Notes: a model not told the origin generated them from the letters alone. DNA of 64,000 nt from Zygnema circumcarinatum SAG 698-1b (GCA_037447605.1 CM074810.1:3134880-3198879), one strand, 5' to 3'; positions 174 to 56,800 are shown, counted from the first letter of the stretch. A program made the numbers and translations.

Positions 174-3255
<3,082 letters not shown>

Positions 3256-5745
3256 GGTTGAAGGGGGGTTTAGGGCCTTTGGTGTTGGGCGGAAAGTGGG
3301 TTGGGGATGGATTGTAGATAATAATAATAATAATGGTTATTTGGTTATGTGAGTGTGACCGATTCCGGTTTGTAATAAAGTGATTTGCGTCTCCTGTTCC
3401 CTCTTCTTTCTTGTCCCCAAGTCTCTCTCTTTCTCTTCTTTCTTCTCTCTCTTCTCCCTTCTACCCCTCTCCCCCATCTCCCCACCTGTATCCCCTCCCC
3501 TCCCCCCTCCCACCCTCTCCCCCTTCTCCCCCCCTCTCCCGCCCACTTCCCTCTCTTCCCCCCCGTCTCCCCCACCCCTACCTCCCTCCCCCCTCTCCNN
3601 NNNNNNNNCCCTCTCCCTCTCCCTCTCCCTCTCCCTCTCCCCCTCCCCCTCCCCCCACCTCTCATTTCTCTCCGTTTCCCTCTCCCCTGCATAATGGCCT
3701 GGATCCCGTCCCCGTTTTCTGGACCCGCCATCGTTTTCCGACCGTCAGATAGAAAGCCGCCGACTGCCCACGAGACGCCGCGCGGCAACCGTCGGATTCA
3801 GACGCGGTCGCGATGCCGCCGTTGGATTGGATTCCGTACAGCCCCCAGAAAAGACACCGGAATACAAAATTTTCGAGAAGAATATCGGACAATACCGCCC
3901 GATACAATATTGGTTTAACTTTCGATACTTCGTACAATATCAAGATGTTACGATATTATTCCGATATTTGACTTTCCTGAGGACTAAATCCGCCCCTCCA
4001 TTTTGGCGTGGGGGACGGGGCGCCACCTGCCGCCAAGTGGCCGTTGGGTGGCCGTTGACGGTTGGGCCCCGCCGGGAGCTGTGGCCCGAAGCGGCAGTCA
4101 ACGGCCACCGTCGGTTAAGGAAACGACAGCCGCTGCCGTGGCCACGTGTCACAAGGAGAGACCCAAACGGCAGAAATTTAAGGGCTAGTGGTTTTTGGAT
4201 GACTTCGGGGGAGGTGGAACTGGTGGGGGTGGTTTCGTTTTTGGACTTGGTCCGATGTTCAAGTGCAAGGTTCAATTGGTCCGGCTTGATTTTTTACACA
4301 AAAAGACAAAATATTTAAGGATGTAAATGATACGTAATGATGGCTCGCCAGCTCACGAATGTTACAGATATTGGGATGTACGGTAGGTGTTGATGACGTG
4401 GCATGTCGCGTCAGAGCTTAAAGAGGAAGATGATTTGCCGTACAAGATAGACACTGGGCCTAGCCGTTGTAAAAAACAAGTGCTTTGTACTATTGTGTCG
4501 TATTCCAACGGTCAAGACAGTAGTTTTTAAGGATCTGACTCACAGGTACGACGAAGCGTCTCGTCGCTTCTGCCGATTTTATCGTATCGTATCTCTCTGG
4601 ATACGTGGGAGATCTCGCAGGATCTGCGGGCAGGTAGAAAGTTTTGGCCGCATGCGGTCGAGTTATTGGAGGTCCTTCAGGGCACTAGAACAAATATTTT
4701 TGCACGTGGAAATTTAGACTGTGATTGGCCTACTTTTGTTCAAGCGCGTGGTGACGGCACGTGGCGGCGAGCTAGTGGCCGATCCTTGGGAATTGAGATC
4801 GGTCGTTAAAGGCCTGGGCTTTAATAGGTCGGCGCGAAGGACTGTCAGCCCGGGGGAGTGAGGGCAAATTTATCTTATTATTAAAATTATTACATTTCTT
4901 TCTTGCAATTATTTTATTTAAAAAATAATATGTTCAATTTGAGAATGCGATGTGTGAAGATTTTAATTGAGTTTGAAATTCTACAGGAAGGACAATGGGA
5001 TCGTCAACCATTGACCAACAATTGGCCTGCAATGGTTGAAACCATGGCCAATGGTTGGCTAGGTCGCAAATCGACGGTTCGTAGCCATTCCAATGGTCTA
5101 TCCAACAATTGGTCCGACCTGTGCAGACTTCCACATTTTGAAGTCTATACAGAGCCAAAATTGGCAACAAAAATTCTCCCAATCTTAAAATCTTGTAAAT
5201 TTCATCCCTGCCCATGGTCAGATAAATTTTCTATTTTCCCCCAATCCCTCAAAAGGACCTTCTCCCCGCAGTACGGTCTATTTTGTCAATTTGTACCGCC
5301 CTCCTGACTATCCGTACGCATTCCTTTGTCTCTTCGGACCATTCGTACAGCCCGTCCTCAATTGGCAATCCGTACACTTTGTCCAAATGACCGTACAACC
5401 CCGTCCTTCCCAGTGGACCAATCGCGCCGTTCCACGTCAGCACCGCCACCGACCATTGCAGCCGGTCAAAGATCCTCCCTCCGCCCTCAGATTCGAGAAA
5501 TCTCAGTTATGCCACGTTTCTTTTCCTCATTCGTCAGCACCTCCCTTCCGTAATTTCGGGCGCCGCCCGATGCGGCGCTCCTTCGCGACAAATTTTGCCG
5601 CCCGCCGGTCTTAAAGAGAGACCCCTCCGCCCGCGTCTTGCCCCCCACACCCCCCCCGCTCTCCCTCTCACTCTCCCTATTCCTCCCTCTATCTCCATCC
5701 ATCCATCCATTCTCTCTCTCTCCCTCTCTCCACACGCCCCCCCCC

Positions 5746-8635
5746 ATGGCGGCGGCGCTATCCTGGCTGCTGGCAATGGCGGCGGCGGCCGTCCTCCTCC
5801 TCCCCCCCCCCGCGGCGCGCGCGTGCACGTACGAGAGCGGCGTGGCGTACGGCGGCGGCGCGAGCGACCTCGCCGTGGCGCCCCCCGCGGCGGCGGAGAG
5901 CCGCGAGGCGTGCTGCCTCGCCTGCCGCGCGGCGGCGGGCTGCCTCGCCTTCACGCTGGGGGGGGGGCTCTGCGTGCTCAAGAAGAACGTGGTGGGGCCC
6001 ACGCCCAACGCCTCGGCCACCTCCGGGGTCGCGACAGGTGGGGGAGGGGCTATCTTTCTCTCTCTCTTTCGCTCTCTCGCGCGCTTTCGCTCATTCGCTC
6101 CGTCTCCCTCTAACCCTATATCCCTCCCGGTCTCTCTCCCTCTCCCTCCTGTCCTTTTATCTCTTCTATCTATTCTCTATCAAAGTTGTTCGCTCCCTCT
6201 CTTTCTCCCTCTCTCTTCCTCCCTCTCTGTTTTTCTCTCTCTTGCGCTCTCTCTCTTTCTCCCACTCTCTCTCCCTCCCTCTCTTTTTTTATCTCTCTCT
6301 CTCTCTCTCTCGCTGGCATTGCTTCATGTTCAGTCCTCACATTTCCTGGCAGCTGTCGGCGGGCGGTGAGGGAGAGAGAGAGAGAGAGGAAGGGGTGGGA
6401 AGGAGAGGGCGTTGGCTCTCAAGCCGGGGCCCCAATGTGTAATTGTTTATCTATGCCTTTTTTTTTTTTTTGTAAATTGCCTGCTTGAGGATATGGAGAA
6501 CATATTTTCATGCAGCATTCGTTTTTGGGCAGCTCTTGCTGTTTTGGAGGGGTACTTTTCATTGCTGCCCTGTCGAAACAATCTCAAACAATCTCTTCCT
6601 TCCGAATTCTCGACAAGGAGGCAGCCTTCGGAAGTTTTGTTTCGGGGCAGTTTTGTGGAAATTCATGCTGGGACTTCCCGGGCTGCTCTCCCGGGCAGGG
6701 AAACAAATGTTTTCCTTGAACTTTTTTTAGCGGCCGCCACGTGGCAGCAGTCGCGCCCTCCCGTCAGCGCCCGGCTCTTGACCGACAGAAAAATGTGGTA
6801 CGGCCATTTCGGGCGCAAAACGACAATTTGTAAACGGACAAAACGAAACTGTCGTTTTGTAGCCTCTCCAACTGCCGCACTTTTAAACGTTTAGGTCGCG
6901 GTTGGGATATAGGACAAAAAACAATAATTGAAATTCCATGTCAGCGTGACGTCACTCAACTGATGTCGATGCCGTACATGGTTTTGTCGTTTAGTGGGAA
7001 AGTGTCCCACAGCCTTTGAAAGAACTGTACAGGTGTCGAGTTCTGATTTGGTCAAGCTGATGACGTGTAACCTGGCCATCCTTGATAAAGTCACACCCCT
7101 TGCTTGATAAAGTCATCACCTCGTCCATCGCTGAATTGTCGTCTACTTAAAGCGGTTAAGCTGTTGGGCCGAGGGCAGAGGGAGGGCGTGACTGAGTGTC
7201 ACACGGGGTAGTGTTGGATGGCGTGAGGGGGCCCGTGTTGAACACGAACATGGGGAACATGGGCCGCGACATGAAACATTGTACCATGTCGGTGGGGAAA
7301 CATGGGCCCATGGCCACATAGGGTATATGGAGATATGCGTGCATGGGACATGGGGGTATTAGTGGGCATGGCGACATGTAGGAGTGTTCAAATAGGAAAG
7401 TGGAACATGGGGGGGGATGCGGCATGGTACCAGGAAGACTAATAGAAACAACATGGGGACCTAGGGAGTTGACAACATTAAGATATGGAAGCATGAGAGT
7501 ATGAAGCCATGAGGGAGAGGAAGAAAGAGAGTGAGAGAGAGGGAGAGGGAGAGGGAGAGGGTAGCCATCTTATAATGTGAGCATGTGTCCATGGCGGACA
7601 TGGTACAGGGGTGTGCACGCCGGACGTGGGGTACGAGTACCCGCTCTTCGACATTTCGACCATTCCGGGGATCGCTAACCCACAGATGTGCTGCTACTGG
7701 TGTAGCGCCACCATCAAGTGCGTGGCCTTCAGCTTCTTCAAGAGCGGGCCCAACAGCGGCCAATGCCGCCTCAAGTACGCGTTAAACAACGCCGTGGCGA
7801 GCCCCAACGTCGTGGCGGGAACCCGTAAGCGCACACTTCTCACCCTTGCGGTTGCGGGCACATGCAGGCACATGCAGGCACATGCAGGCACATGCAGGCA
7901 CATGCAGGCACATGCATGCATGCATGTACGTGCATTTAGGGCAAAAGGTCTGAAGCTGCTGAGGGGCATGGCTGCCATGGATGGGCACATTGCAGGCTCC
8001 GGAACGACTTGTACATATGAAGAGGGCTTTGATATCCGCGGGTTTAATCTGCAAACTTTAACAAACATCGCCACCAAGCAGGCTTGCTGCACCCTATGCT
8101 CCCAAAACTCCAAATGTTTTGCTTTCACATACACCTACAGTGGGGCGCAAGCGAAGACCTGCATACTCAAGACTTCGAGGGTGAACAGAATACCCAATGC
8201 AGATGTCATATCTGCTAGCAGCACAGGTATCTCCTTAAGGACCTCCTCTCATTTCTCCTATTTTGTTGAATGCTGGGGAGGTCGATCCAATCAGTTGATT
8301 GAGTTAAACTGTTTCCTTCCCCTAACCTGTCTTCTGCTGTTGAAATGTCTGCATCAGTTCTCTAACAAAGTGAAATTTTGTGTCGACCTCTATTTTATTC
8401 GTGCAGGTTCTCCGTGCGTGGCGCCCCCAGCTACCAGTGAGTGATGCTCGGCTATGCAGCATGCATGCGTTTCTGTGTATGCGTGCACGGGTGTATGGTG
8501 GCATGCATGGGATGGGATGCATGGAAGCCCTTCTGCAGCTACGCTTACTTCTTCTCCCATCTGAGCCTGCAGGCACTGCTGCTCCTCCTCCACAGCGACC
8601 TCCTCCAAAGCGCCCTCCGCCAATCCGCAGGCTTT
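5746..8635 (+). CDS. Secreted protein with three PAN/Apple-like domains and a Pro-rich tail; exons ~5746-6037, 7609-7824, 7996-8226, 8407-8436, 8573-8635 (3' end not resolved)
   Basis: Hydrophobic signal peptide MAAALSWLLAMAAAAVLLL, then three modules C-x(~20)-CC..C....C.AFT/S...C.LK. All junctions are AG/GT in phase 1. Confidence 0.8.
7856..7925. repeat. (CACATGCAGG)n decamer tandem repeat in an intron
   Basis: About five to six direct copies read directly. Confidence 0.9.
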
Positions 8636-41700: not shown

Positions 41701-42905
41701 GTTAGCAACCTAAAGCAAGAAATATCAAACTCCTCGCTCTCTTTGATAGGGAAGGCGAAAAATTTCACACCATGGTTGCAGTCGTGTTGGATAGATACGC
41801 CAATCTCCGCTACCAGAAAACCCATCCCTATCGAAAATAACAACGAATACTGGAAGCTAGTGAAGAAAAAAAATGTGGTGTAATAGCATAGGAAGTATGC
41901 CAATAGAATCGCAATAGTTTTCAAAAACATGTGGGGGTGCACTCGAGGATTTATCTGCAAAAGTAGCAACGTTTTAACAAGCATTAGAGAGAAAAACATA
42001 GTTGAAACATCAAAGCTCGACTTTTTAATAGCCGCCTTCAGCAACTGCAGTTAACTTTAATCGTTGATCCAACTCAGACGTCAAAGTCTTAGCTCAGCTA
42101 TACAGGTTTCCATCCGGACTCACTTTCTGTTCTTTGAAGAAAGCTTCAACCCGCTTCTTGAGTATTATATAGAAACCCTTCTCTCCTTCTTCTGCGTATT
42201 CAAGAGTAGGCGTTCCCACAACTTCGTTTTCCCTATTGAGCTCTCCAATGCAGTACTTTCCAAGCATTTTTCTGTTGGATCCCGGCGGAACACACAGGAA
42301 CAAGTGCAAATGCGTGTCACTTCCAATAAGGTTCTCTCGAAAAAAGTCTTTGCATTAGCCAGCTGGTGCCTGCTAAAAGAAGGAAGCAAAGATGAAGGAC
42401 TTTGTCACCTTACGTAGGTTGGATGATAAGATTCAAACAGCTGAGTGCAATCGTGGCCCGCCTTAACATAAATAATCGCTCCACCAGGATGTGCCGACAC
42501 CCTGCAAGCGCTACCGCATTCAGGAGATGAACAAAACCAATGTTGCTGACTGATGCTACTGATGTCAACTCCTGAGGTATATCGAGGTTCGGATGATGCC
42601 AAACGGACAGAAATCTACATATCTAAAACGTCCGCACACATCTCGAGCTCCATCTCCAGCTCCAGTGGCGCAGAAATCCGCTACAAACAGTTCAAAGGCC
42701 GCCTTTCAACTTACCAAGGAGTCACATCATACACTTTCCCTCCGATTATTAACCAGCAATCTTCCGGCCTGTCATGCGCTGCAACTTCACGGAGGCTGTA
42801 TCGCGCTTTGCTCAATGTTCCAGCAGAATCAAGCGCAGGCTTTTCCTTCTGCCCATTCACGCAATCAATACCGTGTTTCTGCGACTCCTTGAAAGAAAAC
42901 ACCAT
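38711..42905 (-). CDS. Cytochrome b5-fused front-end fatty acid desaturase (Delta5-type), ~13 exons
   Basis: b5 domain (CWLIIGGKVYDVT, HPGG) and His boxes QHDCNHG, WRQQHVVGHH, GGLNYQ-IEHHLFP. The last exon 38711-38791 ends in TAG. Splice sites are canonical. The start ATG could lie further upstream. Confidence 0.93.
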
Positions 42906-43698
42906 GGCGGCTTCGTAGAGAAATCCACGAGCCGTAGAGCATGCAAGATCGGACAGTAATATCGCATCTGCAGTCAAGCTGCTGCAGGCGGTCGAGCTGC
43001 AGGAGCTTGCAAGGGCTTGCCCATTCCTGAATCCTGCAGCTCCAAGACAGGGGAGCCCCGCCCACAGTGACTTTGAAGGGCGTTCCTTGTTCAGCAAAAT
43101 CACAAATCTGAAAAAAACCCGTTATCTGCGACCCTTAACGGGATTCACAAGACGTAGTTTCACAGTAATTTGTAACAGGTTTTTCACATTTAAGCATTTC
43201 TATGACTTCCATGTTCACTGTTCAGGCTGAATCAACGGGAAACGGAGTGCCTCCCATGTAGCCAGCATTGTAAGGTCCATCCATCACGACGTTGGCCAAT
43301 GCGAAGCCGTCACGTGGCAGCTCCTCCGACCCCGACGCGTCCATCGCCATCTGCGATCTCCTTTCCACGTCGCGCGACTGCTCGCCAATTGCTTCAGCAG
43401 ACGTGGCGCCATCCTGACCGTCGATCCTACCTCCCTCCCTCCCTCCCCTCCCTCCCTCCCTCCCTGCCTGCCTCCCTCCCCCCTCTGAGTATTTCAATCT
43501 TCATCGACGGTCCGAAGTTGCCACACGTGTGAAAGCCTCCTCAGTCGGCAGTCCCAAAACGATCACAGCCTACGAGCAGAGAGCTGAAGAAGGGCCGGGC
43601 GAACTGAAAAGGAGGGAAATGGAGTTGGCAATTTTGCTGCCCGGACTCGTGCAGTCGTGCCCTGCTTTAGCTGGTCGAAATTTATCCAAACCGCTTTT

Positions 43699-43727
43699 GC
43701 CTGCACGAGCGGTGGAGCATGTGGTTT
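43699..43727 (+). pseudogene. 29-nt fragment of organellar/bacterial-type SSU rRNA
   Basis: GCCTGCACgAGCGGTGGAGCATGTGGTTT versus the conserved GCC(T/C)GCACAAGCGGTGGAGCATGTGGTTT. Confidence 0.65.
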
Positions 43728-45078
43728 TGGTTCAGATTCAGAGAGCAGAGTGCAATGGAATCTGGTTAAATTGAAATATTACAGTAAACGAAAAAACTAC
43801 CGTACTTTGTCCAACCTCTTTGACAGAGAAAGAAATTGCTGCTTCTACCCTTATATGGCTCTCCCTTCCATTGTTGCGCGCGCTTGACGACGGTCTTGTG
43901 CAGGTCTGGGCGTTGGGGCTTGGTTGCCTGCTTTCTCAGCCCTTGTTTCCCCTTCGTTTTATCTCGAGATATTTTCAACGTACAAATTTCCTCTGGGAAT
44001 CCCTCATCCCTGTTGAAGGGCTCCCCCCTTGATCTGTGTGTGGCTGCTTGATCGGAGTCCAAGGCGTCTTTCACTTTCTTCGATGTGCATTCGACGGGGC
44101 ACACACTCAATGTTGTAAGCGAGATGATTGTTGTTGGAGTAAGAGTTATTCTGACAACAGTGTCGAACCACAGAATGCCTCTACTTGCGACCGCTCACGG
44201 GGAGCGAGTCCGGCCTGATCATATCCTTTGGGGACAGTGCTCTGCACATTTATGAGCATGCTCAGGGGGCAGATTCGACTCAATACGATTTGTTGACTCG
44301 CAGTACGCGTATTAATGTGTTGCTGCTCGTGGGGGCATAAGCGCACTGCAACTCTGCCGCTTGGAAACCTTTTGCATTTCTGACGTGTAAATTTACTGAT
44401 CGGCAACTGCTGACAACATGCATAAGAGCTCTTTATAAAGTTGTCTGCAATGTTCAATTTAACGGCACATATACCCAGTAAAAAAATTTAGTCCAGTTTT
44501 TCGACATTTTCAACAAGATAACTACCTTCTCACCACCACTACCAACAAACTGGAACCAAACTGGATATTAAAAATTACCATCATCAGGTGTTATGGCAGC
44601 TAATATTCTTTCACATATGAATTGCAAAAACCGCAGTGGCATATTCTGCAAACATACAACGATCACAACAGGGTATGCAGCCCAAGTCTTATCGAATTGA
44701 TCGGACGATGTCTTACCGAATTGATTCTTCAATTTACTCAAGAGACGAGAATGAAGAGACTGCTGGCTTTTTTTTTTTGCTTTTTTTTTTGCTGACTTTT
44801 TTTTTAAAAAGGAAAGAGAATCTAAGCCGCACAAAATAGCTCAAGCCTGGAAAATATACAGGTCTAAACTCCAAATCTTCTCAACCCGGATTGCTTCAGA
44901 TGGCAAACCTGCATGGAAAAAAACAATTCCTGTAACAGGTCAAAATACGAACACAAAGTCCACAATACATGACAATAGCTGAACCAATGACTGCTCTAAT
45001 AACAAGGATGATTCAAAAATTTGGAAGGATCATTAGCTGAGCAACTTTGCACTCAAAACTTTGACCAAACCTTTGACA

Positions 45079-45168
45079 GAGGAGATGCTCAGACCCTTAG
45101 ATACCGCCATCAGATTGCGCTCAGATTAGTAAGGATTGTGATCTAAATAATCATCACTGCATCTCCTC
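45079..45168 (-). ncRNA. Box C/D snoRNA with a D guide to 18S GCCCUUAGAUGUU (plant Um1445-equivalent site)
   Basis: 10-bp terminal stem GAGGAGATGC/GCATCTCCTC; boxes C GTGATGA, D' CTGA, C' TGATGG, D CTGA. D guide GGTATCTAAGGGT. D' guide CAATCCTTACTA is antisense to 18S UAGUAAGGAUUG. Confidence 0.9.
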
Positions 45169-45562
45169 CTGGACTGGATACAGAAAAGGCAAGTCATTCG
45201 ACCAAACCTGAACTCTTCCAATCAAATGCTTTAGTTCACAGAAATAGTTAAGAGCTAGAGCTAGACAAGCGCGTGGATTCCTAGCCAGAAATTACGTAAA
45301 AATGGGAAACGCACCTTTCAGAGTTTCTAAGAATTGGAGAAGTCCTGACGAGCACTTAAAAACAACGGTACTGAAGCATGAACCACTTGATATCTTGGTA
45401 GAAGGTCTTGCATTCTGGTAATGGAAGAAAACAACAGTCAGCCATCTGCACAAGCACGTAAGCTCTAGACGACGACTTCACAACCGACCTTATTGCAAAA
45501 CCAGAAAACAGAGTGGTATTGACCAAACTGCTAAAAACAAAGTCACATAACAAAAAACAGCA

Positions 45563-45708
45563 GAATGTAATCCTGCATCTGACGCCGGTTGCATGGACCT
45601 AAGTTATCGGCCCTTCACCAGTCAGACAACAGGATGTTCATTTATGGGCAGCAGAACACCAGCTCATGGAAATATCCGACGGCTGGTTGCCTGAATAGCT
45701 GCCCACGT
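45563..45708 (-). ncRNA. Box H/ACA snoRNA (target not identified)
   Basis: Hairpin 1 GTGGGCAGC..GCTGCCCAT with an internal pocket, H box AAATGA, hairpin 2 ATCCTG/TCTGAC..GTCAGA/CAGGAT, then ACA plus 3 nt; ~145 nt. Confidence 0.8.
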
Positions 45709-45960
45709 AATACAAATGAAGCCAGCTGAAGCGACATAGTGAGACTCAGTCCTGCATACAGACCGTGGAAGGAAATAAGGATCAACTGCTCACCTTCACT
45801 CAGGTCCCGTCAGGGCCTCCGGCAACAAGCACCTGGAAAAATAAACCTTATCAGAGAATAAGAAATCTTAATTCGTGATTATACCGAACATCACACGTGG
45901 GCTACTAAGAATTACGTCACCGCTCAAGGACAGCCAGAAATTCGATCACATCCCTGATGA

Positions 45961-46088
45961 AGCTGTCTCAGACCAAACGTCCCACATGCCACACAAGCGG
46001 CTACGGGATAGCGAAGGCTGAGTGATTAACGGCCACAAGGGGCTTTAATCCTCAAAGCCACATCGATTTTGCTTCAGGGAACGGGCCC
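45961..46088 (-). ncRNA. Candidate H/ACA snoRNA; the 3' pocket is complementary to 5.8S GAACG-UA-GCGAA
   Basis: Stem CTCAGCC/GGTCTGAG followed by ACA-GCT; pocket strands TTCGC(TA) and CGTTT. The H box is imperfect (TAATCA). Confidence 0.5.
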
Positions 46089-46359
46089 AAAGGCATAAAA
46101 AAGCCAAAGAACCAACTTTATTGAAGCTAGGATGCGGTTAACAAAAAAACAAATTTATCAAATGCAGCAAAATCTCTGCGAAAAAACTTCGCTCAGGAAC
46201 GGAGGAAATACACTTCGATCTGAATGGACTTATGTCCGTTCATAAGAGCAGTTTCTAGAAACGTCAGTATCTACTGAAAACAATGCACGTGGCAGGACAG
46301 ATGACACAGTATAGGAGACAAACATGTATAACATAACGTGCATTCGTATTCGCGATAAC

Positions 46360-46433
46360 AGCGATCAGATAACTTTGAAGACATTCTGTAAAATACTCAT
46401 CATTGATCAGTCTCTCGTGCTCATCACTTCGCC
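46360..46433 (-). ncRNA. Box C/D snoRNA with a D guide to LSU rRNA AACUUUGAAG(A/G)C (plant Cm1479-equivalent site)
   Basis: Stem GGCGA/TCGCT; perfect C GTGATGA, D' CTGA, C' ATGATGA and D CTGA. Guide GTCTTCAAAGTT; the +5 rule points to the C of AAC. Confidence 0.9.
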
Positions 46434-48056
46434 AAAAATAAATCGCGAGGAGTAATGCAACACACAAATACATAAGATAAAAAAAATGGAAAGCTTGTGG
46501 CAATTAAAAAGGATCAGTCTCTGGCTTGTTGCTCTCTAGGAGCAAAAATAGCACTGTTTGAATCAGCGTCGATCATTTGGGGAAAGGTTCTTCATTTCCT
46601 TTTTTGCCACAAGGAACAAGCACATATCAACAAACAAGTGGCCAAAGAACCCAGTGAAGAATTACCAACCAGGCTAAGGACATCCTCGCAGCTGCTCTTC
46701 AGCGTTTGTGCAGAGCCTCCGACTCGACGAATGGGCTGACCTGCGAGAACAACGCCAATCTAAGAAATCAGCCAACCGAACTCACAAGTCGGGAGCAACG
46801 CACTACTCAAGATGTACCATTCTCAATTCGCCGACAGAAATAGAAATGTCTGAGGCGACTCAACAGAAAATGAATGCCTCTTCGCGCTCAGGGGATCTCG
46901 GCCCTATTCATCTCTTAAAGAGACACAAGGCAAAGAGAAGTAGAGGCGGTTCCAAACACAGACGCTAAAAGCAACGCAGAAGCTGGACACAAGACTCCAG
47001 TCAAATTCAAAGAACCATTCAAAAGGCTTCATCACTATAATCTCCTGCACAAACTGCAATAACAGCATCTCAAAGTGCCGGATATAGACAGCCATAACCA
47101 GAGAACACGGGCCGTTTCCTATGCCTCACGAACAATACAAAGAATGACGACAAAGAGTGTCCAATATGAGAATGCACTGAAAATTCTAGCCAGATTGCAC
47201 AAAAAGTTCCGACTTGTCAAGACAAGAATCAATAACCTAAACCCAAAGCCTGAAGAGCCTGAAGAGAACTTACAAGAAGAACGCTGTAGTCAACACTGCA
47301 GTTTCAACCAACAGCAGCCCTCAAACACGGGCGAGAAAGAAGAGGCCGCCGCCGCCGCCGCATTGCGTTCCGCATCATCCTCCCTGAGGAGCAAACTTTG
47401 CCGACTATCCTCCCTTCGATTTCGACGAACCTCCCAGCGCAGACCTCCGACCCTTCCAGCACACATGGCCCCAACAGCGGCATCCAGACTAATACCAACA
47501 CACCTTACGTGCAGGGTCAGGACAGGACCGTCCTGAGGCGATAGAGTAGACCTGGGGGTGGCGGCCGCTTTTATATTTCAGGAGGGAGGGCGGACGTTGC
47601 TTCCAAAACTCCGCCTGCTGGCGCTGAACCCTGTCCGATTCGCGGCTGCCTGTTAGTAAGTGAGTCGCTGAGAGCCGTCGGATTTCTAAGATCTACGGCC
47701 AGAAGGGTTCAGGGCCAACTAGAAACCTTCAAGGTACAAGTAGATCGCTGGTTTTAGTTGTAAAACTGACAAGATCACAGAACCAAAGTAGATCTGAATT
47801 TCACTTGATGAAGTTGAATATGCTAGAGTGGAATCGGACCAGTAGGGGGCAGGGTAAGACCGTACAAAAAACCGTACATCTTCGTACAGTACGTACAGTA
47901 CTGTGTACAAGCATAGGCTTCATAGCCCGTACGAGTCCGTACGGATCTGCTCCCCCTCTTCTTTCCTTATGGAGAACGGAAAGAGGGACGGCACTCTGCA
48001 AGCTGACACGTGGCTATCGGAGAGAAACCCTGAGGGAGAAACCCTGAGGGAGAGCC

Positions 48057-48064
48057 ATGGCGGT

Positions 48065-48112
<48 letters not shown>

Positions 48113-50029
48113 GGTGTCATGCTCTTTTGTTTTTTGTTTTTGTTTTTTGAAACCTCTCCGTTTCGCCTACCTTTCAGCCACTTTCTTTCCATATCCTTCA
48201 GGAAATTTGGAAATTCTATGCAATTTCATAATTTTCCGTCATTTTTTCTCAAGTAGAAAGCATCCCGTCGGCCCAGTTTCAAGCTTTAAGAATTAGGGCT
48301 GACGACAGGGCCTTTCTGGAGATCACGTTGTCTTCTTATCTTTAATTTCGTGATATAGAATAAACCCTCTCCCTTTCCTCCCTCCCTTTTCTCCCTCCCC
48401 ACTTCCAGGCGAGGTTCTGAAATTCTCCAATTTATCCAATTCAGCTTAAAGGAGTCGGGTTGGAAAAATTTAGGGTTTCCGTGTTTTAGGGTTACAGTGT
48501 TTCTGGGGTTCAGTGCTCCTTTATCTTTTTAGGGTTCAGGGCTTTGGGTGGTTATGTGGACATTTGAAATTAGGTTTAAGTTGAGTGGGTGAAGTGATTG
48601 GGGGTGGGACTTACAGACCGTTCCGGTGAACCCGAAGCCATTTTTGAATGACTTGACAGGAAAGCCTGTTATTGTGAAGCTCAAATGGGGGATGGAGTAT
48701 AAAGGTGCGCGCTTTTTGCCCTCCCTCCCTCCCTCCCTCCCTCCCTCCCTCCCTTCAATCCGGCTCTGATAGGCTAGTGAGCAGCTTTTGGAGCTCCTGC
48801 ACTCCTCTCTCTTCCTTTTCTCGCCTCTGCCTTTTTTCCGCCCTTCTTTCCCCCTCTAGCAGATCCAACCATTCCTGCTGTTTATTATAATTGCCGCATT
48901 GTCTTTCTGGCAGGCTATTTGGTCTCCGTGGATTCGTACATGAATTTGCAGGTACGTGCTAAATTTTGGAATAAATTTTAGTCAAGCTTTTGCATTTAAA
49001 CTTTATTTTTCTCTTTTTTAGGGTTTTGTTATGATTGTTTTGGTTGTAGGTTTCACTAGGGGTCTCTAAGTTTGAATACATGCGAGATAGGCTCATTGAG
49101 TGAGCAAGGAAGTCAGAACCGCTTCAATATGCAGAGAAGAACTCGTCACCCAGTCACCTGCTACAGCACATCAGTGCAGGAATTTGGTGGTTGCATATAA
49201 TACCGTGCAGTGTCTATTTAAAGTGTTCATGATAAATTTATGAGCTAGATATCTGCTGAAGCCCGTAATTGTTTCATTGGTCTATACGTTTTCTCGATTC
49301 AAAGATAGGAGTTTCTTCCCTTGTACCATATTGCTTTATTGGTTTCTGGGCTTAAGGAAGGGTCTTGCTGTGTGGGCCCATTGGCGGGCAGCTGGCAAGC
49401 ACAGAGGAGTATATTGACGGGCAATTCACAGGCAATCTTGGGGAAATACTTATCAGGTAATGCGATGGAACTAAATTGGTTTCTACACTCTGTTTCTGAT
49501 TTTCCATCCCCCTCTGCTTCGTTCTCCGTAGTTGAATTACTGCCTTCAGATCTCACCCGCTCCTTTCCCTGCTCGCTTCTTTCTTCCTTTTCCTCTTCCT
49601 TTCCCTTTCTTCCTTTGTTAGGTTCCCTTTGCACCTTAATCCCTTACCCATCTTCCTCTCCTTTCCCCCTCTCTCCCCATTTCCCGACCCCTATCTCCTC
49701 TCTCCCTCTCTCCCTCCCTCCTCTCTCTCCTCCCGCTGCCCTAACCTGTCCCTTAGTTGGCAATTCACTATAGCATGTTTCCCTCTTGATGCATGCCCCG
49801 TCATTCATTTTCATTTGGAGTTCCTTCCAACCAGGCACATGGTTCACCTCCGAGCCTTAGGTTTTAAGCAAAAGATGCTTTGAAGTAGAAGAAAATGCCA
49901 TAATGAAACTTCTATGACTTCTGTACTTTTGTGGTTATTGCTGCATTGGTTATGCAAAGCAGGTGTAACAATGTGCTCTACTTGCGAGGTGTACCAGAAG
50001 ACGAGGAAATACAAGAGGAAGGGGAGTAA
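48057..50029 (+). CDS. SNRPF: Small nuclear ribonucleoprotein F (SmF); exons 48057-48062, 48617-48704, 48914-48951, 49392-49456, 49963-50029
   Basis: Spliced product [87 protein letters not shown]. Confidence 0.97.
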
Positions 50030-51073
50030 TTGCTAATTGGCATACAGTAGATGAGCCTGTTCAATGGAGGGATTACCTAAGCAGCTGCAAATAGGAGGGT
50101 GACGGCTTTTCTTCCTCTGCCATGGCTTTTTTGCTACATGATTGATAAGTCAATTTTTTTTTTTTTTAAATGGTTGAAGAATAGCGGCAACACAATTAAT
50201 GCCATTTTTCACATTTAGCGACAGAAAGTTGCTTTAGGCCTTGAGGCTATGTCCTTACCTCAATATGAAGGAGGCCCGTTTGCAGTTCTAGGAAACGGTC
50301 AACGGAACGGTCAACGGAACGGTTTAGTGTACATGTAGCTTCCGATTCATGCGCTTCAATGGAATGTGAAAGAAAGGAAGTTATCGAGAACGTTTTGCGG
50401 AAATGGCTTGTTTCAGGTTCAGTTTCAGTTTTTTGGTGCATCTTTTTGTTCTCACGTAAACTGATGAATTTAATATCGGAGGAGGCCCACTCTTTTGCCT
50501 CGTTAAAAACAAGAAAAAAAAAAACAAATAAACAGAGTACACTCCCCACTTGCAAACTTTAAAAACCAAAAGCGAAATCTAACTCTCCTTTCACTCCATT
50601 CAGTTCTGCTCCGTTCCGTTCGGTCACGTTGACAAGGACGGCTGTAACTGGATCACGATTAGGGTTATGTTGTCATCCCCCTTCCGTTCCGTCAGTGCGT
50701 ACTGAACTAGCGTGTAGCTTGTCTTGTCTAGTGCTTGTCTTCTTAAATTATTTTGCTTGTTGAGGCCGCATCTTTCACATGTGTGTCCACATCATTCTTT
50801 TTTGTGCAGTGCCCTCTTTGAAACTTTGGTCGCATTAACGAAGTAAAAGTATCAAGGGGATAAGCGCCCATCCTTCCCATTGTCACTGTGGCTTATTCGT
50901 GTGGTGGGGAAATGATGGCAAGGCCTTGTAAAGAAATGGATGCGATTATTGTAGATGATTTTTTTATTACGGAAATGAAGAGTCCCGAAGGGCCAACTGT
51001 TACGAAATGTTTCGAGGGTGTGTTTCCTCCTTGTTTATTTTTAGCATGGTAGTCGTCCAGAACATCTCCTAAT

Positions 51074-51152: not shown

Positions 51153-53357
51153 AATGTTGATGTTAGGGGTCCTCGGGCCCGCCATGAGGCCCATCGCCCT
51201 GTTGTACGGCCTTTCCCTATGTTGCGGCTGCCGTACGGCTGGCGGGCAGAATGAAATCTTTCTGAGAGGGGCGAGGGCGTCCCAGGGCAGCGCAGGAAGA
51301 AACTTACACCAATGGCAACGTGCCACGTAATATGAGGCTGACGTGGCAGTGTATAACCTTTTGCAGGAGCGGCACAGAGCCGGCTCTATGATGAGCTTCT
51401 ATGTTGCTGTTTCATGAGACAGCTAACTGGAACATTGGAAATTAGTTTCTGAAACTACTGAGACTAGAACTGTGACCTGCATGGAACCTCTGGCGAAAAT
51501 CTTGCTTCCGTACGCGCAGGGGTGGGCGGACTACTTTTGGCAATATTTCCGCACACATTATGATAAAAATAAATTTCTGGCAACTGCAGGGGTGCAGCAG
51601 TGTAGGCTCTGGAATTTGGGCGGTGGCTCCGTCTCCTGCAGAGAGAGAGAGCGAGAGAGGCACTGCAACGGGAGAGTGGGAGAGTGGGAGAGGGGGAAGG
51701 GGGAGGGGGAGGGGGAGGGGGAGGGGGAGAGGGGAGAGGGAGAGGGAGGGAAGGGGGAGATAGCGATCGGCGCAGTCATGGCGCGCATGCGGCTGCTCTT
51801 CTTTCGGCTGGACCGACTATGGTGGTGGCTGGCAGTGCTCTCCATTCTTTCTGTTCTCGGGCATGAGATCTCTCGCAGCAGCGGCTATGGTGTCGCAGAC
51901 GCAACGGAGCTTGAAGGCTTTGGAGACGAGATGGATCTTGAAGAGGAGGAGGACGACGGCCTCCCTCTGCTTAGTCCTCCTGTAAAGCCAATAAGGTCTG
52001 GATTTCACACAGACAGGGGTCCTCCTGCAGCTGAAAAGAAGAGAGAGGGAGAGGGAGAGGGAGAGGGAGAGGGAGAGGGAGGGGGAGGGGGAGTGCGGAC
52101 TTCGCCGGAGAGAGAGATTGAGGATTCGGAGGAGGAGGAATTAGAGGACGTGAGGGAGAGAGATATTGGTCGGAGAATGACAGAAGCAGTGTGGGATGAT
52201 GAAGAATTTGAAGGCGTTCCGGTGGGAGAGGAGACTGTGGAGGAGGCTGGGAAGAAGGAGAGAGAGTTGAAAAAGCAGAAACCGAAGAGAGAGAGCCTTT
52301 TTTCAAGAAAGTCAGGAGCTCAGGGTTTCAAGAGACCCTCTGGTCCTTTAGGGTATGTAGTTGAAGCGTTGTCAGGCCTGTTTCTTGCATTCTATGCAGT
52401 GAATTATTGGCTAGGAAGGAAAGAAAATGAGAAGCTTGCGCTGGCGTGGGCCGAGCAATTTGCTTCAGATAATGCGATATTTGAGAAAAATTTTAGTCTT
52501 TTAGGCTCAGGAGACGGTGTAGATGACCCTTTGATGATGAAGGAGGGACAGAATGTATTCAAATTCTACGCCTCAGGTCGACGATTCTGCGAGGGGCTGC
52601 TTGCTACTCTTGACTTGCGGAATCGACACGACCTAATTTCTGTTATGTGGTACAACCTTGTCCCCAAGAAGGACCTGCTCACTGTTGAAGTGTACATGAA
52701 TGAAGATGCAATGGATCCCTTCGTTTTGGCGGTTACAAAGCGCAAACNNNNNNNNNNAGCGTGTAGCTTGTCTTGTCTAGTGCTTGTCTTCTTAAATTAT
52801 TTTGCTTGTTGAGGCCGCATCTTTCACATGTGTGTCCACATCATTCTTTTTTGTGCAGTGCCCTCTTTGAAACTTTGGTCGCATTAACGAAGTAAAAGTA
52901 TCAAGGGGATAAGCGCCCATCCTTCCCATTGTCACTGTGGCTTATTCGTGTGGTGGGGAAATGATGGCAAGGCCTTGTAAAGAAATGGATGCGATTATTG
53001 TAGATGATTTTTTTATTACGGAAATGAAGAGTCCCGAAGGGCCAACTGTTACGAAATGTTTCGAGGGTGTGTTTCCTCCTTGTTTATTTTTAGCATGGTA
53101 GTCGTCCAGAACATCTCCTAATAGGGGGTGTCAGACTTAACAAAATGTTACGAATATCGAGTTCTTAGTATTACGAGGATTTTTTAAGTCTGACACCCCC
53201 TAATGTTGATGTTAGGGGTCCTCGGGCCCGCCATGAGGCCCATCGCCCTGTTGTACGGCCTTTCCCTATGTTGCGGCTGCCGTACGGCTGGCGGGCAGAA
53301 TGAAATCTTTCTGAGAGGGGCGAGGGCGTCCCAGGGCAGCGCAGGAAGAAACTTACA

Positions 53358-53397: not shown

Positions 53398-53826
53398 GTG
53401 TATAACCTTTTGCAGGAGCGGCACAGAGCCGGCTCTATGATGAGCTTCTATGTTGCTGTTTCATGAGACAGCTAACTGGAACATTGGAAATTAGTTTCTG
53501 AAACTACTGAGACTAGAACTGTGACCTGCATGGAACCTCTGGCGAAAATCTTGCTTCCGTACGCGCAGGGGTGGGCGGACTACTTTTGGCAATATTTCCG
53601 CACACATTATGATAAAAATAAATTTCTGGCAACTGCAGGGGTGCAGCAGTGTAGGCTCTGGAATTTGGGCGGTGGCTCCGTCTCCTGCAGAGAGAGAGAG
53701 CGAGAGAGGCACTGCAACGGGAGAGTGGGAGAGTGGGAGAGGGGGAAGGGGGAGGGGGAGGGGGAGGGGGAGGGGGAGAGGGGAGAGGGAGAGGGAGGGA
53801 AGGGGGAGATAGCGATCGGCGCAGTC

Positions 53827-56800
53827 ATGGCGCGCATGCGGCTGCTCTTCTTTCGGCTGGACCGACTATGGTGGTGGCTGGCAGTGCTCTCCATTCTTTC
53901 TGTTCTCGGGCATGAGATCTCTCGCAGCAGCGGCTATGGTGTCGCAGACGCAACGGAGCTTGAAGGCTTTGGAGACGAGATGGATCTTGAAGAGGAGGAG
54001 GACGACGGCCTCCCTCTGCTTAGTCCTCCTGTAAAGCCAATAAGGTCTGGATTTCACACAGACAGGGGTCCTCCTGCAGCTGAAAAGAAGAGAGAGGGAG
54101 AGGGAGAGGGAGAGGGAGAGGGAGAGGGAGGGGGAGGGGGAGTGCGGACTTCGCCGGAGAGAGAGATTGAGGATTCGGAGGAGGAGGAATTAGAGGACGT
54201 GAGGGAGAGAGATATTGGTCGGAGAATGACAGAAGCAGTGTGGGATGATGAAGAATTTGAAGGCGTTCCGGTGGGAGAGGAGACTGTGGAGGAGGCTGGG
54301 AAGAAGGAGAGAGAGTTGAAAAAGCAGAAACCGAAGAGAGAGAGCCTTTTTTCAAGAAAGTCAGGAGCTCAGGGTTTCAAGAGACCCTCTGGTCCTTTAG
54401 GGTATGTAGTTGAAGCGTTGTCAGGCCTGTTTCTTGCATTCTATGCAGTGAATTATTGGCTAGGAAGGAAAGAAAATGAGAAGCTTGCGCTGGCGTGGGC
54501 CGAGCAATTTGCTTCAGATAATGCGATATTTGAGAAAAATTTTAGTCTTTTAGGCTCAGGAGACGGTGTAGATGACCCTTTGATGATGAAGGAGGGACAG
54601 AATGTATTCAAATTCTACGCCTCAGGTCGACGATTCTGCGAGGGGCTGCTTGCTACTCTTGACTTGCGGAATCGACACGACCTAATTTCTGTTATGTGGT
54701 ACAACCTTGTCCCCAAGAAGGACCTGCTCACTGTTGAAGTGTACATGAATGAAGATGCAATGGATCCCTTCGTTTTGGCGGTTACAAAGCGCAAACATGT
54801 GAAGGCAATTCAGCGGGAGAATAAGGATCTGAAGGAGTTTGGGAGCCCACTTGACTTTTCTGCTCGGCGGAGATGGCCAGCTGACGAATTGGCGGTGATA
54901 AGCGATTCGCGGGACGCAGCTACAGAGGTCGTATCTGATGTGATAATCGATCAGGTGCGAGATGTCCTCTGCTTTCTCCTCCTTCACCCTCTCCCTCTCT
55001 CTTTCCCACTCCCTGTCGCTCTCCTTGGCCCGTCGGGAATTTGCGAAAACCACCACTTTTTGGCGGGAGGAGGTGCAATACAAGCCAAGGATAGGATTAT
55101 GGTAGTACTAGCAGTCCCTCTTTCTTTCTGTCTGCAAAAGTATTGCATGCCAAACAAGGCATAAGAAAGTGTCTCAGTTGATTTCATGCTGGCGTTGATA
55201 GGCATTTAGCAGTTTTTTGTCCCTTACTCATTCCTTAAAGCTGATACTTACATCAACAAGGAGAAATTTATCGTCAATCATTTTGGATAAACAACTAGCA
55301 CTACACCCTCGTTGAGTCGTGTATCAGAATAGAACTTTGCTCCATGTTCACAAGCAGTACTTTTCCTTCGACTAGTTAAGGTCTTTCCAATCCGCAACAG
55401 ACCGTCCAAAAGCATCGAATAGCTTCCGTTATCAAGAGAGGGATATACCTTTTGGACATAATCGCACTTGTCACTGGAATTGCTCACTGGCTTTGCAATC
55501 GCAATGAACGGTCCCATGTAGGAGCTTGAAGCAGTTTTTTTTTTTTTAGTCCTTGAGTCATACTGCTTTTTAGCATTTACGATCTGTAGAAAGCGAATTG
55601 TAGTTTAGTGTTTGTTGTGTTAGAAATGTGATTTAGGAGTATTTACTGCAGATTAGCGGAACGCCTGCACATTTTTCTCCCACCTATTGTAGCTGTTCTG
55701 CATAGTCTTTTGCCCTGCAACAAAGCTAAAACTTCCTGCAATTGATCGTTTTTACTCGGAGCCTTCATCAATAAATTCTGTAAACAAAGCAGTTCTGCAA
55801 GAAGCTTCGTCGAAAGGAAGTTTAGGCAAAGCATCAGCTTTCCCCTCTCTGTAACAGAGAATAGCTGGGCCATGTGTTGCAGAAAGATTCGGGGTGGGAG
55901 GGACGGCTGCCACTGTTTGGCCCGACATATAGTCAAGCTGTCTATTACCTTGTATGTGATTGTGAAGCTGATAAGGTTGTGGGGTTCTGGGGGTGGATTC
56001 GCAGCTCTTCGGAGACAAGGTTTTTGAGAGGTTTTCAGAATATTTTGTATCTTTACACTTTTCTGATCAATACCCTCATGGAACTCACAAGAAACTTCTT
56101 TTGTTCAAGTTCAATCTCCCATCCCCGAAGAAGATGGCAGAGCTCACGAAGCTAATGGCAGCCATCCCTGTCTTCATTGACAATGTGGGACGCTTTAAGC
56201 TAAGTGCCGCTGTAAGTGCCAACTCTCTCCTTTTTCTGATGATCGATTGGATGGTATCTATGCATGTGCTTGCTGCCAACTCTCTCTGTTTCTCTCCCCC
56301 ACTCTCTCTCTCTCGCTCTCTCTTTCCTCTCCCCCTCTCTCTCTCTCTCTCGCTCTCACTTTTCTCTCCCCCCCTCCCTCTCACACCCTCTTCCCTCTCT
56401 CGCCCGCTCCCCCTCCCCCTTTCTCCCTCCCTCTCTCCCTCTCTCTCTTCCCCTCTCTCTCTCCCCCCCTCCCTCTCCCCCCCATCCCTCTCTCCCTCTT
56501 CCCTCCCTCCCTCTCTCTCTCACACACACCCCCCCGTTTGCTGCACTGTTGGAGCCAAATGTTAGTGTTGACAAACGTGGGTCGGCATCCTCTGTCTATC
56601 CAGGGTCGCACCAAGGCAGATAGTGCGCGTGCAAAGCAGTTGGAGGAGGAGCAGAAGGAGAAGCACGAGCAGAGAATGGAGGCCATTCAACGAAAGAAGG
56701 AGGAAAAGAGGAGGGCAGAGGAGGCCCGCCGGGCAGAGATTGAGGCACGGCTTACTCCGGAAGCACTTGCAAAGCGGCAGGAGAAGGAGAGGGCAAAAGC

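Follow-up and report, generated by a model that had tools for sequence, protein, structure and literature searches.

What is encoded by a stretch of genome that protein-based annotation leaves blank? The question is raised by a region of about 2.7 kb (44860-47575) lying next to the gene for the spliceosomal protein SmF in the streptophyte Zygnema circumcarinatum SAG 698-1b, within a 64,000-nucleotide (nt) stretch of DNA (GCA_037447605.1 CM074810.1:3134880-3198879); this whole 64-kb stretch is referred to here as the window. The region contains no protein gene. Its minus strand is a same-strand cluster of five guide RNAs for the modification of ribosomal RNA (rRNA). The five small nucleolar RNAs (snoRNAs) are Z103-like, snoR147-type, snoR136-like, snoR77-like and snoR19/U25-like; their genes fill the blank, and targets can be named for four of them. 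The genes are accompanied by guide-target matches, by the lack of any coding signal and by a divergent layout with SmF. They are new members of known plant families, and as a type of gene they are fairly ordinary.

Scans were run over 44500-48600, 43500-49500, 44400-47700 or the whole window. All five genes lie on one strand within 1.6 kb, and Rfam matches in the region are confined to this strand. The scan for box C/D genes tolerated a single mismatch in the C box, asked for CUGA as the D box and took terminal stems from 4 bp upwards. Within 44400-47700 it returns exactly three genes, and none other, on the minus strand; over both strands of the window it gives 24 raw matches. A perfect C box is present in only two of the 24, both of them in this region. 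No terminal stem elsewhere in the window is longer than those of the three genes (6, 8 and 11 bp), and just two background matches, both on the plus strand (42423-42562 and 45875-46021), tie at 6 bp. A further candidate at 47036 has a perfect C box, with no D box or stem partner.

Similarity to known families varies between the three. The Z103-like gene belongs to snoZ103 (RF00149; 66.3 bits, gathering 44, E 3.6e-11) and is the sole match in the locus to exceed an Rfam gathering score. The snoR147-type gene falls below threshold against RF00203, which is named snoR160 in Rfam (37.9 bits, gathering 42); its D-guide core, GUCUUCAAAGUU, is identical to that of the family. The snoR19/U25-like gene scores 28.6 bits against snoZ266 and 23.2 bits against SNORD25 (gathering 39), both below the gathering scores; the SNORD25 alignment retains the AUCUAAGGG D guide.

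Box H/ACA genes were sought as pairs of single hairpins whose hinge contains ANANNA and which end in ACA plus 3 nt. The snoR77-like gene is the sole strict match on either strand of 44400-47700. It folds at -62.8 kcal/mol (z = -5.8), and none of 200 shuffles is as good. When the segment is scanned alone, snoR77 (RF01230) is the best family; the score is weak (18.7 bits, gathering 47), and the identities fall in the pocket and H-box residues. The snoR136-like RNA is recognised by its 3' half: 46061-45961 matches the 3' half of snoR136 (RF02410) at 23.6 bits (gathering 43), with the pocket residues conserved.

Targets are numbered on L136, a plant ribosomal DNA (rDNA) contig in a leaf-nodule Burkholderia assembly; it is of angiosperm origin and is not the organism's own rDNA. 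It was found by searching genome contigs with a degenerate 20-mer of large-subunit rRNA, and only L136 and a second locus, L118, likewise plant rDNA in an assembly of this kind, were used. By Rfam, L136 is a complete plant-sized unit, with 18S at 846-2655, 5.8S at 2853-3008 and 25S at 3236-6623. Dozens of bacterial assemblies and metagenome-assembled genomes (L117-L192) carry eukaryotic rDNA contigs, presumably as contamination. A 15-nt rRNA pattern tried on viral contigs gave only chance phage matches.

Mapped positions were transferred to L136 through known sites. The U24 triplet C1447/A1459/G1460 (Wu et al. 2021, PMC8053127) corresponds to L136 C1446/A1458/G1459, and the supplement row 'C1479 / C1471, SnoR147' of the same paper to L136 C1478. 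Arabidopsis pseudouridine and methylation sites are compiled in Streit and Schleiff 2021 (PMC8351944); in that numbering, A824, G2805, U2816 and C2826 match the L136 letters at offsets of +1 and +13. The 18S positions Um1232 and U1445 match L136 at an offset of +4.

The D guide of the snoR147-type RNA forms 11 Watson-Crick pairs and one G-U pair with L136 25S, and the fifth nucleotide is C1478. This is Arabidopsis 25S Cm1479 (C1471 in older numbering), which is mapped as methylated and assigned to snoR147. The duplex exceeds the 95th percentile of shuffles. An earlier assignment of this guide to the U24 site (yeast C1437) was dropped, as the numbering tied to Arabidopsis gives Cm1479.

The D guide of the snoR19/U25-like RNA forms nine Watson-Crick and four G-U pairs on L136 18S U1449, which is Arabidopsis Um1448, a mapped site assigned to snoR19. 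Taken alone, this match falls within the shuffle range. The D' guide for 18S Gm1434, a trait of snoR19 and SNORD25, is absent; instead, the D' guide forms 12 uninterrupted Watson-Crick pairs with L136 18S 1227-1238 and exceeds the shuffle 95th percentile. A Gm is predicted from this duplex at 18S G1229 (L136 numbering), in the context ACAUAGm-UAAGGAUUG; the position is in neither Arabidopsis site list, and the modification may be lineage-specific.

Both H/ACA-type RNAs have a pocket that fits a mapped pseudouridine. In the snoR77-like RNA, the 5' pocket lies 14 nt from the H box and pairs by 4+8 bp around L136 25S U827; its score is 11.5, against a shuffle 95th percentile of 9.5. L136 U827 is Arabidopsis 25S U826 (826/828), a mapped pseudouridine assigned to snoR77 and equivalent to human U1523. 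A pocket for 18S U752 was sought in the 3' hairpin of this RNA, and only chance-level matches were found. In the snoR136-like RNA, the 3' pocket pairs by 8+7 bp around L136 25S U2846 and scores above all 200 of 200 shuffles. This is Arabidopsis 25S U2833, a mapped pseudouridine assigned to snoR136 and equivalent to human U4390; Kim et al. 2010 (PMC2875012) list the target of Arabidopsis snoR136 as 'P2: 25S 2833'.

These four guides were found without the Arabidopsis tables and match mapped sites assigned to the families that sequence similarity suggests. This argues that the four guide-site pairs (18S Um1448, 25S Cm1479 and the pseudouridines 826 and 2833) are old.

The Z103-like RNA can be compared with grass copies. 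Its 20-nt 5' element, CCUUUCCCCA-A-AUGAUCGAC, is near-invariant in an alignment with seven grass copies and forms a 12-bp duplex with L136 25S 1494-1505. The duplex adjacent to D' is only 7 bp, on L136 25S 1534-1540. Grass snoZ103 arrays in metagenome contigs (L240, L262, L257 and L201) belong to the same Rfam family and share with it the 5' element of 20 nt and a 3' element, CAAGCCAG. Grass copies come three to five in tandem at intervals of about 200 nt, and their D' box is degenerate (AUGA or GUGA); the locus has one copy with D' CUGA, and the 3' element of this copy is also one nucleotide nearer to box D than in the grasses. On grass-associated contigs (L240, L262, L257, L201 and L213), snoZ103 arrays stand beside snoZ101 and snoU31b. 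A metagenome scan with the Z103 element returned grass arrays and no relative sharing the gene order of the locus.

A prior sequence-only reading had proposed at least two C/D and one or two H/ACA snoRNAs here. Its four coordinate pairs hold, through Infernal for both C/D genes, the strict scan for one H/ACA gene and the partial snoR136 match for the other. For the two C/D RNAs, boxes, stems and guides are all found where they were proposed (45079-45168 and 46360-46433), and the Infernal/Rfam matches fall exactly there; the search adds the snoZ103 gene, which was missing from its list. That the C/D guides would meet positions 2'-O-methylated in land plants is borne out by 18S Um1448 and 25S Cm1479, both mapped in Wu et al. 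2021. Of the two proposed H/ACA RNAs, the snoR77-like one is canonical, while the snoR136-like RNA has the 3' hairpin but not the H box. All features are listed in the table.

Table. Observed and predicted features of the snoRNA region and the adjoining SmF gene (positions counted from the first letter of the window; a slash marks a splice border).
Feature	Position	Strand	Details
C/D snoRNA, snoZ103 family	46601-46509	-	C AUGAAGA, D' CUGA, D CUGA; stem 5-8 bp
C/D snoRNA, snoR147-type	46433-46360	-	perfect C GUGAUGA, D' CUGA, C' AUGAUGA, D CUGA; stem 5-6 bp
H/ACA-like RNA, snoR136-like	46088-45961	-	canonical 3' hairpin, ACA, 3-nt tail; 14-nt spacing
H/ACA snoRNA, snoR77-like	45707-45563	-	hairpin, H box AAAUGA, hairpin, ACA, UUC tail
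C/D snoRNA, snoR19/U25-like	45168-45079	-	perfect C GUGAUGA, D' CUGA, D CUGA; stem 10-11 bp
TATAAAAG box	47575-47568	-	putative core promoter of the snoRNA precursor
Predicted first exon	47545-47274	-	GC-rich block of about 270 nt; donor TTCTT/GTAAGT
Predicted exon, 75 nt	46740-46666	-	ttctcgcag/ and /gtaatt; GC 0.60, U 0.19
Predicted exon, 39 nt	45832-45794	-	ttttccag/ and /gtgagc; GC 0.64, U 0.21
Predicted exon, 100 nt	45414-45315	-	attaccag/ and /gtgcgt; alternative acceptor 45446; weakly supported
Predicted last exon	44908-44830	-	after the region's best-scoring acceptor, ttttttccatgcag/G; end uncertain
SmF, divergent	48057-50030	+	five exons; exons other than exon 2 read from sequence
SmF exons	48057-48062 (ATGGCG), 48617-48704, ~48914-48951, ~49391-49457, ~49963-50030	+	exons considered singly

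A further matter is the transcript that carries the guides, and whether it codes for protein. The longest minus-strand open reading frame (ORF) is 79 amino acids and overlaps a snoRNA. A 153-amino-acid ORF on the plus strand has no Pfam match and no match among 1.84 billion representative proteins; an 88-amino-acid ORF has no Pfam match, and a 58-amino-acid ORF starting with ATG within the predicted first exon has no homologue in a protein search. No conserved ORF was found in the predicted exons, which were examined singly. The predicted 39-nt exon carries stops in frames 0, 1 and 2; no reading frame can therefore cross it.

The promoter, splicing and processing route of the snoRNA precursor are inferred from sequence features, of which the TATA-like TATAAAAG box is the first. 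It is the only promoter-like element and precedes the first snoRNA by 950 nt; between the two there is no other TATA-like, telo-box or site-II element. Transcription probably starts some 25-35 nt past the box, near 47545. The box stands 480 bp from the SmF ATG in a head-to-head arrangement. SmF itself begins with a short first exon, ATGGCG/GT, read as MA ahead of exon 2. This second exon (48617-48703) contains an LSM domain in Pfam, and its matches in the PDB are SmF chains alone (E 4e-13). AT skew on the plus strand switches near 48000 from +0.23 to -0.28; each of the divergent transcripts would consequently be U-rich, like plant introns.

Short predicted exons follow the promoter. The first-exon block has a GC content of 0.54-0.68 and a U content of 0.16-0.28, against 0.38-0.46 U downstream. 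The 75-nt and 39-nt exons stand out sharply as islands rich in GC and poor in U; they are bordered exactly by AG/ and /GT, and the U content around them is 0.37-0.53. Such islands at consensus borders look like plant exons and are plausibly more than mere spacer, which would hardly explain them. The minus strand has 14 acceptor-like sites and the plus strand two; beyond the predicted last exon come A-rich tracts at 44810-44765. In the best splice model, each of the last two introns contains a single snoRNA.

These features are best accommodated, with reasonable though far from full confidence, by a dedicated spliced host gene on the minus strand which does not code for protein. RNA polymerase II would start at the TATA promoter about 480 bp from the divergent SmF gene and produce a precursor of about 2.7 kb, with the five guide RNAs as the sole products of the gene. 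The precursor would most likely be spliced, and its short GC-rich exons would join into an unstable, untranslatable RNA. Trimming of the U-rich introns would release the snoRNAs: one intron would supply three of them, and the two introns after it one apiece. The three C/D RNAs would bind the fibrillarin-containing proteins of small nucleolar ribonucleoproteins; the snoR19/U25-like RNA would direct 18S Um1448 and the predicted new 18S Gm, and the snoR147-type RNA 25S Cm1479. The partner of the two H/ACA-type RNAs would be the dyskerin/Cbf5 complex, with the snoR77-like RNA directing pseudouridine 826 and the snoR136-like RNA pseudouridine 2833 of 25S.

A number of observations weigh against this host-gene model or parts of it. 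The excess of acceptor-like sites partly mirrors plain U-richness, and about five GTRAG-type donors are expected by chance per 2.7 kb. The predicted 100-nt exon and the exon starting at 44908 are not distinct in composition. The first intron (47273-46741, 530 nt) contains no recognisable snoRNA; a sliding fold scan finds a structure at 46990-46851 on the minus strand (z -3.5 in a 140-nt window, -2.5 when refolded) which has neither H/ACA nor C/D architecture. The next intron (46665-45833) would hold three snoRNAs, namely the Z103-like, snoR147-type and snoR136-like RNAs. Hosts of the UHG and GAS5 type have one snoRNA per intron; here the predicted layout has three in one intron and none in the first. 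Plant snoRNA processing works without splicing (PMC2875012, PMC7671301), so splicing is not required. On the side of the guides, the hinge of the snoR136-like RNA has no ANANNA H box and its 5' hairpin is short. For the Z103-like RNA, the candidate 25S sites are the G marked in GUCG*AUC and the U or C marked in AAC*U*GGCUUG; the mapped Arabidopsis sites include neither this G nor the candidate target of the D guide (about L136 2824-2825).

The sequence-only reading had described the locus as a GAS5-like host with tiny exons, no credible ORF, a minus-strand TATA box and a divergent SmF neighbour. The TATA box, at 47575-47568, and the SmF neighbour, with its SmF-only exon 2 and its ATG 480 bp away, are as described; so is the coding side, the longest minus-strand ORF being 79 amino acids and the ORFs searched having no homologue or Pfam domain. 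The GAS5 likeness survives in its non-coding nature, its same-strand guides and its good predicted splice sites, but not in the one-per-intron layout or in the first tiny exons. The first two of these sit inside the 270-nt block, which is more likely to be one long exon, contrary to a strict GAS5 layout; the mini-intron proposed between them (47508-47296) has exon-like composition and is possible.

The best-surviving alternative is an independent polycistronic cluster of the plant type, in which one unspliced polymerase II precursor is cut by endo- and exonucleases and the splice motifs are incidental. Land plants organise their snoRNAs in this way by default (PMC7671301), and polycistronic precursors of Arabidopsis clusters have been detected by reverse transcription PCR (PMC2875012). 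All five genes on one strand behind a single TATA box would suit it, and the Z103-like gene is only 75 nt from the next C/D gene; however, the other spacings (253-394 nt) and the 950-nt snoRNA-free leader are long for the type, grass Z103 arrays are spaced at about 200 nt, and no promoter-like element lies near the first snoRNA. U-rich spacers are likewise found in plant clusters, and chance alone not infrequently yields splice motifs this strong, yet an unspliced spacer gives no reason for two GC-rich, U-poor islands placed exactly between AG/ and /GT. A cluster of this type is therefore regarded as rather unlikely, while deserving serious consideration.

Much less probable is a protein-coding host, with the snoRNAs in introns of the 5' untranslated region of the downstream gene for a cytochrome-b5-domain protein (ATG at 42905). 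That gene is on the same strand, and its first coding exon lies 1.9 kb downstream in good Kozak context; the arrangement would nevertheless need a 4.6-kb 5' leader with at least six introns. The 1.9-kb gap also looks like a promoter region in its own right, with CATATAAGG, which is TATA-like, at about 43853, two G-boxes (about 43526 and 43311) and a promoter-like GA-rich block at 43480-43430. Neither a terminator nor a poly(A) signal was clearly identified past 44830, which would favour read-through into this gene, but the A-rich tracts after the predicted last exon are fit for 3'-end formation. Chance motifs or decayed pseudogenes with no functional RNA are very improbable. In their favour, all Rfam scores but one of the five fall short of gathering thresholds, one H/ACA candidate has no H box and the D guide to 18S U1448, taken alone, is inside the shuffle range. 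Against them, boxes are intact and terminal stems measure 5-11 bp; four guides coincide, independently of one another, with experimentally mapped targets of matching families; the 20-nt Z103 element is kept in comparison with grasses; and five genes are clustered on one strand within 1.6 kb.

Known snoRNA loci each share some traits with the host gene proposed here. The Arabidopsis cluster snoR88-2/snoR19-1/snoR136/snoR64/snoR20-1/snoR38Y-1 (Kim et al. 2010, PMC2875012) resembles it in mixing C/D and H/ACA genes on one strand with no protein. Both contain the snoR19 (18S U1448) and snoR136 (25S U2833) specificities; this linkage could be due to chance, at about 1 in 10. In contrast to the Arabidopsis cluster, the locus has single-copy genes 75-394 nt apart, a 950-nt leader and GC-rich islands with splice borders, and its other partners (Z103, snoR147-type and snoR77-like) differ.

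Hosts of the UHG type, including UHG, GAS5, the Drosophila dUHGs and Neurospora clusters I-V (PMC2780460), have in common with the locus the lack of a conserved ORF and short predicted exons. As in these hosts, the snoRNAs lie between consensus splice sites, and the locus has an exon with stops in all frames; a TATA promoter head-to-head with a housekeeping ribonucleoprotein (RNP) gene adds to the likeness. Unlike them, the locus has splicing that is only predicted, breaks the one-per-intron rule and mixes H/ACA with C/D genes. Intronic clusters of rice and Chlamydomonas (PMC2780460, PMC7671301) place several snoRNAs in one intron, as in the putative intron 46665-45833; their hosts are mostly protein-coding, whereas the locus has no detectable coding capacity.

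A hairpin at 45050-44985 on the minus strand lies in the putative last intron, 45 nt past the snoR19/U25-like gene. Its segment AAUGAUCCUUCC (45034-45023) is perfectly complementary to the 18S 3' end (L136 1798-1809), and CCUUGUUA, slightly downstream of AAUGAUCCUUCC, complements L136 18S 1771-1778. Between them they cover helix 45 on both flanks, co-linear and antiparallel, as do the U13/snR45 acetylation guides. No C/D boxes were seen in this hairpin, and it has no Rfam snoU13 match.

Several sequence features were also observed in and around the shared promoter. Nine GTAC cores occur in 81 bp at 47862-47942, against 0.28 expected from the window average; GTAC is the core of sites for SBP-domain factors, and the cluster is a possible regulatory module. 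Two AAACCCTGA near-telo-boxes (48025 and 48039) stand just ahead of the SmF ATG, with a G-box at 48007. A (GA)22 repeat is found at 48068-48111, and three TTAGGGTT telo boxes (48470, 48486 and 48529) lie in SmF intron 1. Arrangements of telo boxes and G-boxes are typical of promoters of plant translation and RNP genes. Runs of the GGGAGGGAGG / CCCTCCCTCC repeat occur at 43430-43480 on the minus strand, upstream of the cytochrome b5 gene, and at 48715-48755 on the plus strand, in SmF intron 2. Further along the plus strand, 51472-52812 and 53521-55164 carry, twice in tandem, the large exon 1 of a gene for CCDC47 of the PAT complex (Pfam PF07946); their best database identities are 44-50%, to lycophyte, liverwort and streptophyte-alga proteins.

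The cluster ties guides in a distant streptophyte to four modification sites known from Arabidopsis. At present it amounts to good annotation and a testable hypothesis and not to a new kind of system. Tentatively, it may be that this streptophyte routinely uses dedicated spliced non-coding hosts, mixing the animal and fungal one-per-intron layout with plant-type intronic clusters, together with bidirectional promoters shared with genes of RNP biogenesis, here SmF. If so, the green lineage would have had the UHG-type host for longer than the picture from angiosperms implies. If splicing is confirmed, the locus would provide a concrete case for the shift between host introns and polycistronic clusters in green plants.

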